Assembly (NCBI GenBank): GCA_048013815.1
Contig: CM106585.1
Span: 1,674,001-1,738,000, forward strand
Length of the DNA: 64,000 bases
Source: Setoptus koraiensis
Taxonomy: Eukaryota > Animalia > Arthropoda
Reading direction: 5' to 3'
Notes under the pieces: model-generated
Told to the model about the DNA's origin: nothing
Seen by the model: the letters and a program-made list of their open reading frames with translations, nothing else
Databases searched by the model: none
Translations under genes and position numbers: made by a program
Shown here: positions 10,376 through 56,078 of the stretch, one piece after another
How positions within the stretch are numbered: position 1 is the first letter of the stretch
How the letters are laid out: every line of letters begins with the position of its first letter

Positions 10376-12178
10376 GGCACAACGGACGCACACATAGACA
10401 CACGTTGACTGGCTGGGCTCTGGTGAGCTGGTGAATCTAGTATCACTTATAATTACATAATAATAGCAGCTGACGAGTTGCATATTTTCAGCGACTGTCT
10501 CTAGTGAAAGATTACTGCAAGTGGGCATAGTTTTACGTATATCGGTCGACCAATGCGCTTGCCATGATGACAATCATCTTTCAGTCTGTTGTAATCTTTG
10601 GTCGTCGCGTTGCAGATTTGTGCTCTCAGATGTGAGCTGTGTCTCAGGCCGTGTCAGCTACAGCTACAAAAGTGCCTCTAAACTCTATACTACACAGTCT
10701 GTAGCTATAGCTACGTATAGTATGGAGAGAGGCTTTCGCGAAAGCTTCGCAAAGCCGACAACAGTGACTCTTAGTGGCGATGTAATAGTCACGATTGTGC
10801 GGTTATAAACACACACACACACACAAAGTTATGTAAGATGATTCAATGGCACAGCCACCACACACCGACAGCAAACATGCGGCAGCAAGCGTAAGAGTTG
10901 CATAAGAGTTTTGACATTGCTGACGCTGATACTGCAATCAAATCGAACACGACGACAACGACCAACCGTATACCGACTGTACACCGACTGAAGTGTGGGC
11001 CACCGCCGACGAAGACACCGTCGCAACGCCACCATCGCCGGTCACCAGGTTGGTCGCAAGCGACTCGCAACTGCAATATCGGCAACTTATGCAACATAAA
11101 TTGCTAATACAACTTGGTGTGCATGTTGTATCATGCCAGGCGATGCTAGGTGGTCGGTGATGCAACGCAACGCATTGTGTAACGAGTCACTGGCCAGTTG
11201 ATAATGCTGTTGATAATGTTGCCGAGGAATGGCACAAAGAACAATGTGCTTGCCTCGAATGGCACACACAAACATTCCAGTAAACGAGATGAAAATTCCA
11301 ACCGCTACCGGACACAGACAGCGACAGCACAGACTCTATCAACCGGCCACTGGCTACGCAACAACATGGCATGGCGACATAATGAGTCGACTCACATGCC
11401 CGATGAGGATTAGCGGCGATTTTTCGCTGCGATTGGCATGCAAATACTCCTTGTATCATCATTTGGCCGCTCGCAAGCGATACGCTGCCGCCGCTGCTGC
11501 CGCCGTTGTTGCCGCTGTTGTTGCCGTTGCGCAATGTTGTTGTTGCTGTTGTTGTTGCTGTTATTGTTGCTGCAGTCGCAATTGCATCTGCCCGTAATCG
11601 TCGCTGGCCGATCAGCCGGCACTTGTTGTTGTTGCTGTTGTATCATTGGCAGTGGCGTTTGTTGTCTTGTGTGACCATATAACAACTAACAGATTTGTTA
11701 TAGCCGGTGCAATTGAGTTTGAGTGAATTAAGAAGCTGCTCGCTGGCTGGCTGGCTGGCAGTGCGAGCGGCCGAGAACAGATTAGTTTGGGTGCTACTGT
11801 GTTGCTGTTGCTTGGTCACACACAATCAATTACATATGATGATCAATTTGAATTTGCGTGTCTCTCCCTCGGAGTTTCTGGTTGCTGAGACTTGCGCAAA
11901 GTTCGAAAAGTTTGCACAAATTGAGAGTCCCAACTTCGAATTCCAACACACACACACACACACAACAGGGCTTAAAACAGAGACATGCCAATTCGAGACA
12001 CCGATAATATACACACACTCGCAAACACTCGTGGGTATATTTATATCCAGCAAACACACGCATCGTACGCACACCGGCCAAGCTGGCATGCAATGTTAAT
12101 GACCTTGATCACAATTTAATAGAGACACGATATTTTACAGTAGTTCGCACAGGTGATTTTTGTTTGCCTTCCGTTACA

Positions 12179-50384: not shown

Positions 50385-53041
50385 GTCGTTGTTGATGAAG
50401 TTGTGGTTGTTGGTATTGTGCCACAGTTGTAGTCGAGTAGCGTATAAATGAAATTGTTTGTCAGTTTATGGTGATGAAAATTAAATAAAACTGAGAGTTG
50501 TGAATGAAAGTGAAAATAATATGTTTCTACATGTATAGATAATATAAGATTTATTGTGTACAGTTGAGAAATCTCATTTTCTAATTATCAATGTAGGTTT
50601 GTTGATCCTACAAGATAAAAGATGAGACCGATGTAGCATGATGTCTTGAGAGAACAATCTAGTAAATCACTATCTATAAGGACAAACATAAACTTAGTGA
50701 CAATTAAATAGATCTCGACGATTGATAACTCGTGTTCGAGTTACCACATAAGCAGAGGTTTAGTAGGTGGATTCTCGGAGAACTATGAGACGCAAGTTAA
50801 GTTAGCCTAGTTCTGGGCAATAGGATTTATAATGAATAAAAAAAGAACATGGGCAATGGACTGGGCTTAAAATCTTGCTCAAGGTAGCAAATATGATCAA
50901 TAGCGCTCGGCTATGAACTCTGAGACTCAACTATGATCAACATGCTCGCACTTGTATTAGGTGGTGCCTGGAAAAGAAGTTTAGTTAATCAGGTTTACTA
51001 ATCTACTTGGTCTGATAGAGATCCTCGCAACGAACAAACGATGCATGGTTTGTTCGTTGCCATGATACATCAGAAAGTATACTCCAGTAATTTGTACTGT
51101 CTCATTGAACTTGAATCAAGATGCAAACACGTAAAAGTAGTATCAGCGAACAACAGCGATTGCCAAAGAATATTTGCTGTATGCTATTAATAGCAATACA
51201 ATAATGTATAAACGTGTTTCAGTTTTCGCTGAAGAAATACTCAGAACTCTGTCTGAGAGAATTGCAAATTTTCTTTCGTTGAGTGAGGGAGAACAACAGC
51301 AACAGAATTTAGCGAATTTAATCAGATTGTCATACTCGGTTTCCTCAGGATTTAGTTACGTACAGTATCGGATGGTGTTGAGCTGTTAGAAAGGAAACAA
51401 GGCATGTAATAAAAAGGGAATTGAGAGAGAATAAAAGAGGCACTCACCTGGTCGAAATCTACCATGTCGCGGGTTTTAATTCGGCATGAGCTCTTATATG
51501 ACATTGTTATTGTATGTAGGCCGTAGACAATCTTGAGATTTTTCAAAATTCTATGGCGTATTATTCGTTATGTATATTGATCGACTTTAGTCAATATTAA
51601 CAGGCTGTGTGAAATTAGTATGAATAGTGAAATTGAAAACTATCAACGATAAATCCTATCTCAAAATTGGGGTTTGCTACGGATGGATTGTAGTGACAAT
51701 GCAACTGTTTCTTTGTTTGTTTCCATCAGAACGTACTAACAATTTGTATTACAGGCGGCTTGCGATTGAAAATGTTTTATTTCTAACAAGATTCGTTCAT
51801 TGGTTGCTATTGTTGCTGATAGAAAAATAGAAAAAGAAAACAAAAATATAAAGATGATAAAACAAAGACCTTTGATTAACATCTCGTAGTCAGTGCTTAA
51901 CATTGAGAGCTTTGGATATACCATAGTCAACTATGATAGACCATTTGATAGCGAAGACGAGCCAAAACCTGTGTTAGCCAAATGAAGCATGTTAATTTAG
52001 ACACCTGCTAGGTAGTGAACCACTGAGTCAGTCATCATTAAACGAAACTTTCGCTTTTCGAGCGAGTGTTATGTTACTCTGTCGCACATGAACAAATTAG
52101 TCGATTGATAGCTCCATCAGAGGTCGCCTCTCAAATGATGCTATTAGTATTCTGCCATTATGTTTGATGTTGCTGATCTATTCGATGTGATAATGATGGC
52201 GGAATGAGAAAACACCAAACTTTATAAAATGTCAGACACTAACAAACCTGCCAGAGAATTGCAATCAACCTAAGAAGAGAATGAAAATAAATCGACAGAA
52301 CAGGTTGCATGTATTTCCAAGTATTAACTAATTGCTTCTTCAACAGTATAATCGCACGAATGATTCAAAAAACTTTCGCTAGGGCATCTCAATTGTTGCA
52401 GTAAACACTGGCGAAGTTTCCAATAATGAACGAGCAAGAGGCAATTACGCGACACTTGCTTCGCTTGTCTGTCTCGGTATAGCGCAAGTAGATAGGAGGA
52501 AATGAAACAAAAAGAAATAAAGAAGAAGAACGAGAAACATTCATCAAAACAATTTGCATCGTGTATTCTGGAGTGCTCAGCGCCTCACGCGATCATACTC
52601 GCCAAGATGCTCTCAACATAATTGGCATGCACACTGTCTAAAATATATACAATGTATTAAGCTTACATGAATGATTTTGTGTATTTATTTGCGTTGCACG
52701 TAGGATAAGACCACCAACATATTACAGCAAACCCCGTAGTATAGTAAATGCTTCCCAAGTTGGAGATACAACAGATCATTGTAAAACCATCCACATGAGT
52801 TACGATCGCTAACGAACAGATATACTACAGGCGTGCCATCTTGCACCTGACAACCTTGTGAGCACCTAAAGCTAGCAGTGCTGCGCAATATCTCTCTATC
52901 TAGTCACTGACTGAAACATAGATTGTGTTTGTTGTGTTGCTAATGCAAAATTGGAAAGCTCTCGGCTGACTAGAAACTTGCCGGACTCGATTGTTGCATG
53001 ACTATGGAAATGTGCAGTGTAAAAGTGGCGAGAGATAACTA

Positions 53042-53381
53042 GCTAGCGCACACCACATTAACTTGCCTCCGGAGTGTAGCCTAGGCTGGCGGTCTATCAG
53101 GTCTGGAATCCAGACTTGATAGACCGCGGCCTAGGCATCCATACACTATTACAGACAAAAAGATGCAAAAACAACAAACAACAAACAACAACAACACTAA
53201 CAATGTTGAAAACACAGCGGTTCCGAAAGGGCCGCTAAGCGGAGGGTAGTCTCGCCAATGTAGTCAGTTCATCCGGGGGTACTGACGAAACTGGTGGGCT
53301 GCCAATCCGCAACTTTTGTAACTGCCTCTTTTTGTCTCAGAATATCCCGAGAGGTCTGAGGCCAAGTCGGCGATGCTTTTT
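53042..53381 (+). ncRNA. Structured repeat RNA, copy 1 (340 nt; 5' domain is a long hairpin)
   Basis: Shares the upstream AAAGTGRYGAGAGA motif, GAAA hairpin, GCCAATGTAGTCAG...CTGACGAAACTGGTG core, AACTTTTGTAACTGCC and terminal TTTTT with the other copies. Confidence 0.55.
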
Positions 53382-53468
53382 GCTGGCAACCAGTGATCAA
53401 TGGATTGTAAACTAGTAAATTTTTTAAATTGAGCAACCGCTATAGTGCAAAGTGATGAGAGAACAGTA

Positions 53469-53850
53469 GCCGGCGCACACATCTAACAATCGCCTCCGGA
53501 GTGTAGCCTAGGCTGCTAGGCCGCTGGACTGACGAGTCCGGCGTCCCTGCGCAACCCGGGTGCACTGTTACCGACAACCTTCAATTTAAAAACCTAAAAA
53601 CAAGCTTTCATTTAAACATGTACCTAGAAACATATAATGGAAACTACAAAACAGCAGGGTTCCGAAAGGGTCGTCTGCTGGGCGGAGAGGGTAGTCTCAC
53701 CAATGTAGTCAGATCACCGGAGGTACTGACGAAACTGGTGCGGCGGCCGGATCCGTAACTTTTGTAACTGCCCTCTCCACACCCTCCTTTTGCCTCAGAA
53801 TACCCGAGGTGTCGCAGGTCAAGTCCTGGCGCAAGTTGGCAACGCTTTTT
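53469..53850 (+). ncRNA. Structured repeat RNA, copy 2 (382 nt)
   Basis: Terminal stem GCCGGC/GTTGGC, cloverleaf-like 5' domain 53500-53566, A-rich linker, GAAA hairpin, 12-bp stem GGAGAGGGTAGT/ACTGCCCTCTCC, TTTTT at 53846-53850. Confidence 0.6.
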
Positions 53851-53937
53851 GCTGGCAATCAGTGATCAATGGATTGTAAACTAGCAAATTTTTTAAATTG
53901 AGCAACCGCTATAGTGCAAAGTGATGAGAGAACAGTA

Positions 53938-54138
53938 GCCGGCGCACACATCTGACAATCGCCTCCGGAGTGTAGCCTAGGCTGCTAGGCCGCTGGACTG
54001 ACCGGTCCGGCCCGGCGTCCCTACGCATCCCGGGTGCACTGTTACCGACAACCTTCAATTTAAAAACCTAAAAACAAGCTTTCATATAAACATGTACCCT
54101 AGAAACAACTAGAGACATAAAATGGAAACTACAACACA
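53938..54138 (+). repeat. Structured repeat RNA, copy 3 (5' half only, truncated)
   Basis: Near-identical to the copy 2 5' half (period 469 bp), then runs into the upstream motif of copy 4. Confidence 0.7.
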
Positions 54139-54160
54139 GTAAAGTGGTGAGAGAACATTA

Positions 54161-54503
54161 GCCGGCGCACACACCTCGTCCTCGCCCCCGGAGTGTAGCC
54201 TAGGCTGCTGGGCTGCTGGACTGCCCTGTCCGGCATCCCTCCGCGACCCTGATGCACTGATACCGAAAAAACGCTAAAAATCTAAACAACAACAACACAA
54301 ACAACAACAGCAGGTTCCGAAAGGGCCACTGAGCGGAGAAGGTAGTCTCGCCAATGTAGTCAGTTAATCCGGGGGTACTGATGAAACTGGTGCGGCAGCC
54401 GGATCCGTAACTTTTGTAACTGCCCACTCCACGCCCTCTCTTTGCCTCAGAATACCCCGAGGTGTCGCAGGTCAAGTCCTGGCGCTAGTCGGCAACGCTT
54501 TTT
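54161..54503 (+). ncRNA. Structured repeat RNA, copy 4 (343 nt)
   Basis: GCCGGC/GTCGGC terminal stem. Compensatory change TGCTGGAC/GTCCGGCA versus CGCTGGAC/GTCCGGCG in copy 2. TTTTT at 54499-54503. Confidence 0.6.
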
Positions 54504-54706
54504 GCTGACAACCAATGATCAAAAGCGTTTCAACTCTGCTAGAGTGGGGCATTGTAAAAGAAGACTCACAAAACAGACAAGACAAAACAAAAGCTACCGA
54601 GGGAATTGAAAGAGCTGTTGATACACTCGAGGTGAGCTTTAGAGATCTCTATAGTTGAGTAATTTAATCATCATTGAAGCCTTAACTTAAAAAAAAAGAA
54701 TACAAG

Positions 54707-55756
54707 TCATACAATTTTCAACCCAAGCACTCTTTCAATCATGTCTGGTTTCAACCAGAGGACTAGGGGACTTGCGCCGGGCACGTAGGGACCTCGACAA
54801 TGAAAGAACAACAAACCATCCAGTTTGATGATATCGTCACCTATTGTAAGATTGCCTAGATCGCCTTTCAGTAACTTGATAATTTCTTCATCACTTGCAG
54901 AATAAGAATCAATCATCTGAAACTTGTTTTGATTTCTTTCGTTTATATTGGCCAATTTTGGTGCCAATTCTTCGTATTTTGATTTCAACCAGAAGAATCT
55001 GAACTGAGCTTCTGATTCGTATAAATTTAAACTGTTCCATGATATAATATCTAAAAGATAAAATGTCTTAATACTTTGCAAATATATACAATCAATTATG
55101 GTAGATTGCTTTTTGCATTGTTGAAGTGCATCATTTTTGGCGTAACCTGAAGGGGAACCACCAGGCAATTGTGAATAAAACGAGATTAAAAATTTTCCAG
55201 TTCTACTGTAAGCCACTGTTTGGCCTCTATTTGATATAACTAGACATCTCTTTCCCACAGGGACTGCCTTAAGTAACCAATCTGTCTCAAAATCCATTGG
55301 CCTGTCCAAAAGCCATTCCGAAAGCATCACCTTGTTTCGAAAACGTCTGAGATCATTAGAATAGATACTGGATGTTTGTTGCTTTTTAGATGTATTTTTA
55401 GACTCCTTTGAACAACTTGTGGAGGATGATTCATTGGATGTCTCGGGTTCATCTGAAATGATGCCAGTATTATCTGCATGATATTCAGTCCGCACAAACT
55501 CGTCATCCGTTTCATTAACTTCTGTCACAAATCTTCTTAATTTTGCCAACAATTGATCACGTTTTGATTTTTGATTTATCAATATTTCTGTGCGTCGCTG
55601 TTGTTGCTTCGATTTAAGTTTGTCACAATTTTTATACATGGATGCATAGTGAGGGTGGGCTCTATCTGAGGCCAGGTCGTTGAGAGTTTTCCGTATGCCA
55701 ACATTAGTATCAAACCGCTCCAAAAGATCATTGATATTAGAGTCCATGATGTGCAT
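54707..55756 (-). CDS. SNUPN: Snurportin-1 (m3G-cap snRNP import adaptor), intronless
   Basis: IBB-like HPHYASMYK...QQRRTEILINQKSKR, and cap-binding domain MLSEWL, PVGKRCLVIS, LPGG, TIIDCIY, YLLDIISW, FRFFWLKSK, DGLLFFH, Y.PG.SPLVLWLKP. First ATG at 55756 (alternative 55747); the track start at 55774 is TTG. Confidence 0.93.
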   Translation of the reverse strand: MHIMDSNINDLLERFDTNVGIRKTLNDLASDRAHPHYASMYKNCDKLKSKQQQRRTEILINQKSKRDQLLAKLRRFVTEVNETDDEFVRTEYHADNTGIISDEPETSNESSSTSCSKESKNTSKKQQTSSIYSNDLRRFRNKVMLSEWLLDRPMDFETDWLLKAVPVGKRCLVISNRGQTVAYSRTGKFLISFYSQLPGGSPSGYAKNDALQQCKKQSTIIDCIYLQSIKTFYLLDIISWNSLNLYESEAQFRFFWLKSKYEELAPKLANINERNQNKFQMIDSYSASDEEIIKLLKGDLGNLTIGDDIIKLDGLLFFHCRGPYVPGASPLVLWLKPDMIERVLGLKIV

Positions 55757-56078
55757 ATGTGTTGCCAGACTCAAATTGGGGTATCTTATTTAAGTAATCG
55801 TCGAAATAAAAATTTACAAGTCACAACATTGTAAAGTGATATCCAATCGAGAAGATACGAACATCTGTTCGTGGAGGCGTTAGCTGTTGAAGGCAACAAA
55901 CAAACACATGAGTCATGTGACATGACCCATGTGCTCCGCGCATAAACGTGGTGAGAAAATAAAATCCAAATGTCATTTTATGATTTGATCCAAGAACCGT
56001 CTTGATTTGGTAGACCACAACTGATAGGCATATGTATTTTCACGTTTATTTTCAAACAATATACTGACATAGAAAGAG

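Follow-up and report, generated by a model that had tools for sequence, protein, structure and literature searches.

The 64-kb window analyzed here, positions 1,674,001 to 1,738,000 of contig CM106585.1 of the eriophyoid mite Setoptus koraiensis, carries at 53022-54505 of the + strand a short tandem array. With a confidence somewhat above even, we read this array as three complete genes, plus a fourth that is truncated and fused, all encoding an unclassified structured non-coding RNA (ncRNA), a ribonucleoprotein (RNP) scaffold locked by a long-range pseudoknot, here called P1. The array very probably represents a structured RNA gene family that is restricted to an eriophyoid sub-lineage, an orphan family seen so far in this mite and in one close relative with a single copy. 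Observed are the repeats, a syntenic orthologue, compensatory base changes, a preference for the + strand, absence from Rfam and a low copy number.

Repeat search, MAFFT alignment and motif searches recovered four 5' modules, beginning at 53022, 53449, 53918 and 54141, and three 3' modules (53219-53413, 53658-53882 and 54313-54535), which bears out the three full copies and one half copy described in an earlier note on this DNA. The upstream motif of that note, AAAGTGRYGAGAGA, was likewise found four times. In the 64-kb window, GGAGTGTAGCCTAGGCTG occurs four times against 0.02 expected by chance and AACTTTTGTAACTGCC three times against 0.69, both exclusively in the array. Copy 1 (53022-53383, AAAGTG motif to the conserved T5) scores 192.7 bits on its 3' domain with R1, a covariance model built on that domain; its 3' block is 12 nt short, and a T5 occurs internally at 53329-53333. 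Copies 2 (53449-53852; 212.5 bits) and 4 (54141-54505; 228.1 bits) are also full units, the latter being, with its (CAA)n-type linker, the nearest in layout to the orthologue. Copy 3 (53918-54140) comprises only the 5' leader, the 5' strand of P1, helix H1 and the linker, joins copy 4 directly and, from its sequence, reads as a unit truncated after the linker and fused to copy 4. From the AAAGTG motif to T5 a unit measures ~360-400 nt, and its core, from the 5' strand of P1 to AACUUUU, 191-272 nt. Motif searches and R1 found no further copy in the 64 kb beyond 53.0-54.5 kb. Large indels between units, in one hairpin and the linker, explain why Tandem Repeats Finder did not report the array.

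The orthologue lies on a Logan contig (L001) from a related mite, whose snurportin is 85% identical to that of the window and whose gene order, ALDH / element / snurportin, is the same. Here the element is present as one copy at ~11400-11741 (- strand), at the syntenic site and with ~70% identity; most of the DNA of the ALDH-snurportin interval in L001 has no BLAST match, yet the element matches. R1 scores this copy at 183 bits and found no second one in L001. Because the single L001 copy stands in synteny, the ancestral state was probably one gene, and the array a later, recent amplification in the lineage of the window. A spurious open reading frame (ORF) overlapping the L001 copy matched only itself in a protein search.

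The fold was derived from RNAalifold, run on the four full sequences and on the 3' domain, together with hand registration of seven helices. In 5' to 3' order it comprises a leader, P1a (GCCYCCGG), H1, an A/C-rich linker, H2, H3, H4, a 5x5 internal loop and H5, whose apical loop contains P1b (CCGGRGGU); a single-stranded AACUUUUG follows, and then a 3' block ending in GCUUUUUGC. P1, which is absent from the fold of the earlier note, is an 8-bp long-range helix (8-10 bp) between P1a and the apical loop of the 3' arm, and thus a pseudoknot. RNAalifold picks it independently. In copy 1, P1a (GCCTCCGG, 53065-53072) faces P1b (CCGGGGGT, in the H5 apical loop at 53273-53280) with U.G as the fourth pair; in copy 2, P1a (GCCTCCGG, 53492-53499) faces CCGGAGGT (53717-53724) with U-A; and in copy 4, P1a (GCCCCCGG, 54184-54191) faces CCGGGGGT (54369-54376) with C-G, the same pair as in L001. 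P1 therefore covaries, the tally at the fourth pair being CG twice, UG once and UA once. The complementarity between the loop and the 5' region extends over 8-13 bp and falls at the same site in 4/4 sequences, with the longest, 13 bp, in L001, where none of 2000 shuffles reached it. In the single window copies P1 is modestly unusual, its complementarity being reached by 46 to 361 of 2000 shuffles.

Compensatory changes also maintain the helices of the 3' arm. In the hand register of window copies against L001, at least eight pairs in H3, H4 and H5 have changed on both sides and are still paired: GC>AU in H3; CG>UA (twice) and CG>AU in H4; GC>UG, UG>GC and GC>CG in outer H4; and AU>GC in H5. 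In the model-fitted alignment 94% of cells are paired. Double-sided pair changes number 5 against 1.8 in shuffles (5/500 of which reach this value) and 0-2 in slid controls, and the covariation score is 0.248 against at most 0.089 in controls. Among two species, the element thus shows the compensatory changes of a structured RNA under purifying selection. The sense strand of L001 folds with z = -4.2 and the antisense strand with z = -1.8. G.U pairs in P1, H1, H2 and H4 fit the + strand only, in agreement with the strand that the earlier note had assigned on the same ground.

The motif inventory of the earlier note holds; most parts of its fold were recovered, and some were not. Its 5' domain closed by AGTGTA/TRCACT is present in the copies, around a hypervariable hairpin. 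This is H1, which in copy 4 (54192-54258) consists of AGTGTA..TGCACT around a variable branched hairpin and carries an A-box-like TAGCCTAG; its equivalents lie at 53073-53147, 53500-53566 and 53969-54040. The base of H1 (AGUGUA/URCACU) is fixed and its interior hypervariable, ranging from 75 nt, near-perfect, in copy 1 to 67-72 nt, branched, in copies 2-4 and a 19-nt hairpin in L001, so that the wholly different long hairpin noted for copy 1 within the same closing stem, and the C-G to U-A swap noted for copy 4, are both seen in H1. Within H1 of copy 1, positions 53080-53135 form a 56-nt near-perfect palindrome whose two arm differences are G.U-compatible only on the + strand. It gave weak matches to microRNA (miRNA) precursors on both strands, far under gathering scores, and on that account could be a Dicer substrate.

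The A/C-rich linker, 54259-54307 in copy 4 (equivalents 53148-53215 and 53567-53651), is as the earlier note described it; it is predicted to be unstructured, and its length and sequence differ among copies and between species. The GAAA-capped hairpin of the same note is H2 (54308-54331 in copy 4; equivalents 53216-53236 and 53652-53680), with a core GGTTCCGAAAGGG (GGUUCCGAAAGGG in RNA) that is invariant in 4/4 full sequences. The 3' arm of copy 4 (54333-54408; equivalents 53239-53310 and 53682-53756) comprises H3 (GCGGA/TCCGT), H4, the internal loop, H5 (GTCAG/CTGAT) and the apical loop with P1b; across the sequences H3 is GCGGA/UCCGY and H5 GUCAG/CUGAY. Of the long stem proposed earlier, the part CRCCA-ATGTA-GTCAG..CTGAY-GAAAC-TGGTG stands, and the outer GGUAGU/ACUGCC stem around AACTTTTGTA has no counterpart in L001; AACTTTTGTA itself is a conserved motif, as claimed. 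In L001 and copy 1 the stem closes right after UGGUG, and likewise, with two mismatches, in copies 2 and 4: GGTAG pairs with CTGCC, CAGCC or CGGCC, and in L001 GGGCGTCTGCA pairs with TGTAGACGCC. This closure places AACTTTTG/AACUUUUG outside the stem, as a single strand. The terminal stem GCCGGC/GYYGGC of the earlier note, too, lacks a counterpart in L001. The 5x5 internal loop is purine-rich, ATGTA/GAAAC in the window copies; its loop-E-like reading is weakened by GUGGA/GAAGC in L001 in place of the AUGUA/GAAAC of the window, while the purine-rich 3x3 core (GNA/GAA) is conserved. A K-turn reading of this loop was rejected because of too many unpaired bases on the 3' strand.

The invariant, single-stranded AACTTTTG occupies 54409-54416 in copy 4 (equivalents 53311-53318 and 53757-53764; L001 11501-11494) and, by its sequence, is a candidate for an Sm-, Lsm- or La-like U tract, or for an RNA polymerase (Pol) III T4. 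The conserved 3' block of copy 4 (54445-54505; equivalents 53335-53383, with a deletion, and 53793-53852) consists of the GCCTCAGAAT hairpin region, GAGGTCAAGTCCTGGCGC and then GCTTTTTGC, and is ~90% identical to L001. As for the TTTTT that the earlier note placed at the end of the unit, the T-run right after ACTGCC decays (T5, T4, T3, none), and it is GCTTTTTGC/GCUUUUUGC, ~60-90 nt downstream, that is invariant.

The upstream flank of copy 1 (52988-53021, + strand), identified by alignment and direct reading, contains the motifs CTAGAAAC and TATGGAAA and appears promoter-like. Similar motifs (CTACAATC, TATGAAC) are found in L001 at similar distances from AAAGT: CTGACTAGAAAC in copy 1 corresponds to CTGACTACAATC, and TATGGAAA to TATGAAC, with the latter motif ending 11 nt before AAAGT in both. 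The tail of the copy 3 linker holds CTAGAAAC and ATGGAAAC ahead of copy 4, which therefore does have a promoter-like flank, similar to that of L001. A TATA-like stretch is present 26-31 nt before AAAGT in copies 2, 3 and L001 and absent from copy 1. The A-box-like TRGCNNAG is conserved in 5/5 5' modules, and AAYUUUUG in 4/4 3' modules. Pol III is favoured by the TATA-like stretch, by the conserved T5 preceded by a small hairpin and by the A-box-like motif. Pol III genes have an upstream proximal sequence element with TATA (type 3) or internal A and B boxes (type 2) and end at the first sufficient T-run; here the internal T4, and in copy 1 also a T5, precede the terminal T5. Small nuclear RNA (snRNA)-type Pol II is favoured by the invariant internal T4 in a single-stranded Sm-like tract, the internal T5 of copy 1, the missing TATA of the same copy, and the hairpin region with, downstream, a highly conserved block in the place expected of a 3' box. 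Termination of Pol III at AACUUUU would give a compact RNA of 191-272 nt counted from P1a and would offer no explanation for the conserved 3' block. A spliced-leader (SL) RNA was rejected, since AAA|GU makes a poor donor that is not conserved and is too near the promoter-like motifs.

The array would have arisen by unequal crossing-over, as the earlier note supposed: copies 1 and 2 are followed by spacers that share 96% identity, the units carry their own flanks (the repeated unit reaches from ~65 nt upstream of AAAGTG to GATCAA, ~25 nt past T5), and the junction of copies 3 and 4 is located at short ACAG repeats. The linker ends of copies 2 and 3 (53624-53654 and 54109-54140) resemble the upstream flank of copy 1 (CTAGAAAC..ATGGAAAC). 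In copy 2, whose linker is long, the segment immediately precedes H2, so that promoter-like sequence would fall within the putative RNA, adjoining the 3' module. Starting from a 3+4-like arrangement, loss of the DNA between short ACAG repeats would yield such a linker. These steps are readings of the repeats as they now stand. Read depth over the array is 2-3x that of the flanks in three DNA runs and at most ~7x in a fourth, equivalent to the assembled copy number, perhaps with some copy-number variation. This depth, at array level only, and the one copy at the same place in the relative exclude an ordinary short interspersed element (SINE) with hundreds of dispersed copies; the earlier note had kept a structured SINE as an alternative. 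In run X1, a 464-nt contig of depth 5.5 (flanks 127) matching 53374-53786 represents a unit that has diverged (19 and 10 mismatches) and whose linker is different and shorter, and in run X6, with depth up to ~7x the flanks, there are many contigs at 95-99% identity. Both the sequence and the copy number of the array seem to vary among individuals or strains.

Several findings weigh against the structured RNA reading. The six runs that cover the region are all DNA-like, four having contigs even across genes and spacers and two being labelled DNA; in the former four, contigs of up to 12.6 kb cross the region with no splice joints. On its own, window copy 4 does not fold better than shuffles (z = -0.34), and the 3' block is kept as sequence, its structure not being convincingly kept. 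The comparison comprises two species only, effectively two independent lineages, and the structure was derived from the same sequences; the covariation statistics are thin because there are two lineages and the window copies are non-independent and may share changes via gene conversion. The polymerase signals conflict: T4/T5 runs occur internally although the terminal T5 is conserved, and only some copies have a TATA-like stretch. In six loci from more distant eriophyoids, R1 gave no match. At the snurportin-orthologue loci of distant eriophyoids the order is WASH-7 / snurportin / TAF2, with no element, and ALDH-orthologue loci have different neighbourhoods, also with no element. A motif scan of metagenome contigs (GGTTCCGAAAGGG..CCGGRGGTA) gave four bacterial matches, all of them chance.

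The earlier note had found no fit to known RNA families by eye, and the searches agree. Rfam 15 gave no match at gathering thresholds in the window or in L001, and at E up to 10, on 1.8 kb and 411 nt, only chance, hairpin-driven matches, including the miRNA models on both strands of the copy 1 palindrome. The diagnostic boxes are missing as well. RNase P and RNase MRP RNAs are marked by CR-I (GNAANNUCNGNG; GAAAGUCCCC in MRP) and CR-V, which together form P4; U2 by GUAGUA and GCUAAGAUC; U1 by ACUUACCUG; U6 by ACAGAGA with AGC; and 7SK by a conserved 5' hairpin with the paired GAUC of the HEXIM site and by a 3' hairpin ahead of a U tail. In regular-expression searches of the five units, CR-I and CR-V were not found at the P1 strands, and the U2 (GUAGUA, GCUAAGAUC), U1 5' end (ACUUACCUG) and U6 (ACAGAGA) boxes were missing; none of the C/D boxes, hammerhead core or B box is conserved there. 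No GATC sits at a position common to all copies within the RNA body, and H1, the hairpin on the 5' side, is hypervariable; the small hairpin before T5 in copies 2, 4 and L001 is not specific to 7SK. A U6-like TGAGAGAACAGTAGC shows four mismatches and is found in neither copy 1 nor L001, and the likeness of AUCGCCUCCGG..AGUGUAG to the U2 5' end is confined to copies 2 and 3. An 11-mer shared with human U2, a 12-mer reverse-complementary to P3 of human RMRP and the likeness of GGUCAAGUCC to helix 8 of the signal recognition particle RNA were treated as chance, being neither colinear nor conserved across copies. Sm-class snRNAs are recognized by a single-stranded RAU(3-6)GR site between helices, a 3' stem-loop, an snRNA-type promoter with 3' box and a trimethylguanosine cap; the candidate site here, AACUUUUG(U/C), is invariant, predicted single-stranded and one position off this consensus.

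By analogy, the architecture looks most like a telomerase RNA core (as in the Pol III type of ciliates, plants and Hymenoptera, or the Sm type of yeast). Both have a hairpin directly 5' of a long single strand, the whole being closed by a long-range helix or a pseudoknot; both have an internal loop in a distal arm and a U-rich signal on the 3' side, and both evolve fast in sequence, with helices that can expand. The element also combines an A/C-rich single strand with a lineage whose telomeres are T/G-rich. Unlike a telomerase RNA, the element has no template of at least 7 nt, its single-stranded stretch differs among copies and species, and its P1, being G/C-rich, is not a U-rich/A-rich triple-helix pseudoknot. 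The element shares with 7SK, RNase MRP and RNase P RNAs (Pol III scaffolds of ~270-450 nt) the size class, a compact promoter-like upstream region, a terminal T5 after a small hairpin, a TATA-like stretch in some copies and a P4-like long-range helix, but CR-I, CR-V and the GAUC hairpin are absent, Rfam gives no match, the internal T4 is invariant, and the mite long-range strand sits in a hairpin loop, a topology different from that of P4. Arrays of Sm-class snRNAs (U1, U2, SL RNA, 5S-linked) resemble it in the single-stranded AAYUUUUG between helices, the 3' hairpin region, the conserved downstream block and the amplification of short units in tandem, all with their own promoters (promoter-like here), and differ in that the mite U tract has C at its third position, no spliceosomal box is present and 360-400 nt exceeds the size of metazoan snRNAs. 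The element is filed under no known family.

That the array encodes a very diverged known essential RNA (7SK, RNase MRP/P, telomerase RNA or a spliceosomal snRNA), carried beyond the reach of Rfam models in a fast-evolving lineage, is unlikely. Telomerase RNA and 7SK are known to escape homology searches, and the size of ~230-400 nt, the compact promoter-like region, the terminal T-run and the pseudoknot-closed domain beside a single strand would suit such an RNA. So would the A/C-rich linker, which is like the C strand of the unusual eriophyoid telomere, TTTGG / TTTGGTGTTGG (PMC11879100; bioRxiv 10.64898/2026.08.24.746826). On the other side, the units have no P/MRP, U1, U2, U6 or 7SK boxes, single units searched in Rfam at E up to 10 gave no match either, and the linker varies from one tandem copy to the next and from species to species, which is impossible for a template. 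A telomerase template, which would be single-stranded, span at least ~1.4 telomere repeats and be conserved among copies, was rejected, with no match of at least 7 nt to (CCAAA)n or (CCAACACCAAA)n in any unit, the repeat being taken from other eriophyoids. Since the C-strand match is missing and the linker differs between copies, we did not file the element as telomerase RNA. We give a somewhat lower chance to a place within a longer Pol II transcript (a long non-coding RNA or read-through), or to a DNA-level regulatory sequence between the ALDH-like gene and snurportin. The 3' block conserved as sequence rather than structure and the conserved non-coding blocks upstream (50665-50772 and 51922-52128) would fit this reading; the duplicated unit is, however, compact and has its own flanks, conservation tracks base-pairing, and the strand asymmetry in G.U pairs and folding energy points to RNA.

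A tRNA-derived Pol III element, domesticated or dying, of SINE-like or BC1-like type, whose internal promoter boxes would be the conserved blocks, is less probable again. Like such RNAs, the array has the A-box-like TRGCNNAG in a tRNA-like 5' context (5/5 5' modules; in L001 inside CGGAGTGTAGCTCAG, like a tRNA 5' end), a T-run and hairpins that recall a T arm. Apart from one indel each, GGTTCCGAAAGG and GGTCAAGTCC look like a B box or T arm, and T5 comes after them. Yet neither GGTTCCGAAAGG nor GGTCAAGTCC contains a B box within two mismatches, ARAGORN detected no tRNA in the element, and there are no dispersed copies, target-site duplications or A-rich/simple tail. The copy number is low, the one copy in the relative is syntenic, and none of the compensatory changes in H3-H5 and P1 falls in a promoter box or in a region related to tRNA. 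A satellite-type repeat with a self-cleaving ribozyme that cuts transcripts into monomers is very improbable. Head-to-tail tandem units, a pseudoknot with a purine-rich internal loop and CTGATGA in copy 4 recall such satellites, but CTGATGA is found in this copy only, without stem II, no hammerhead, HDV, twister, pistol or hatchet model of Rfam matched, the relative has a single copy, and the units carry promoter-like flanks. Ribozyme, guide RNA and mobile element readings are not favoured. It is also rather improbable that the RNA is the core of an RNP new to arthropods, be it an eriophyoid Sm-/La-type particle, a replaced essential RNA (e.g. a 7SK analogue) or a telomerase RNA with a non-standard template from the A/C-rich loop.

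In the RNP scaffold reading that we prefer, P1 would close H1, the linker, H2 and the arm into one domain, in which H1 would combine a fixed base with a freely expanding interior and the A/C-rich linker would serve as an unstructured tether. The RNA may thus be a stable protein-binding scaffold of the snRNA / 7SK / telomerase-RNA type, with proteins on the purine-rich internal loop, the U tract and the 3' block, and the array formed by unequal crossing-over would raise its dosage. Transcription is inferred, as are the polymerase, the exact ends, protein binding and function.

The protein genes of the window are long and intron-poor and encode Sec6, an ABCD transporter, an ALDH3-like enzyme and snurportin; exact look-ups of two window ORFs matched nothing on record. 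The best-matching named snurportin is that of Aceria tosichella, in keeping with an eriophyoid host; two-chromosome eriophyoid genomes have been described (PMC11879100). Snurportin (54707-55759, - strand) is convergent with the array and is flanked by the array and an RPAP3_C-like gene, while in the more distant eriophyoids L002, L004 and L006 it is 43-50% identical and flanked by WASH-7 and TAF2; gene order around snurportin is reshuffled within the eriophyoid superfamily. A second ALDH3-like gene, 66% identical to that of the window, lies on another contig (L012) of the run that yielded L001 and is either a paralogue or from a second mite species in the sample. Between the ALDH-like gene and the array, the non-coding blocks 50665-50772 and 51922-52128 are 77% and 75% identical to L001 and have no Rfam match. 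A block of ~90 nt at 51424-51515 (ORF 51352-51546, - strand) is ~95% identical to L001, more conserved than the adjoining coding DNA. Its minus-strand exon (MSYKSSCRIKTRDMVDFDQ), at ~51.45-51.52 kb and thus ~1.5 kb away from the array, terminates in a consensus CAG|GTGAGT donor and is probably a 5' exon of the ALDH-like gene or of an unannotated gene. An snRNA gene cluster was considered here, as 51432-51515 (+) reads ACTCACCTGG.., resembling the U1 5' end, and was rejected, the segment being this minus-strand coding exon with no U1 match.

Eriophyoid mites have the smallest arthropod genomes and have lost introns, repeats and many genes (PMC7738191, PMC11879100). The element is unlikely to be junk, because it is syntenic, shows compensatory changes and has been amplified in a streamlined genome. 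To our knowledge, the non-coding RNAs of chelicerates are almost unexplored. If the array is transcribed, it would represent a new family of pseudoknotted small RNAs in chelicerates, and the model R1 together with the pseudoknot offers a handle for finding relatives in mite genomes, testing the fold and identifying bound proteins. Should it instead prove to be a known RNA that has diverged, it would reveal the extent to which such RNAs can drift in streamlined genomes.

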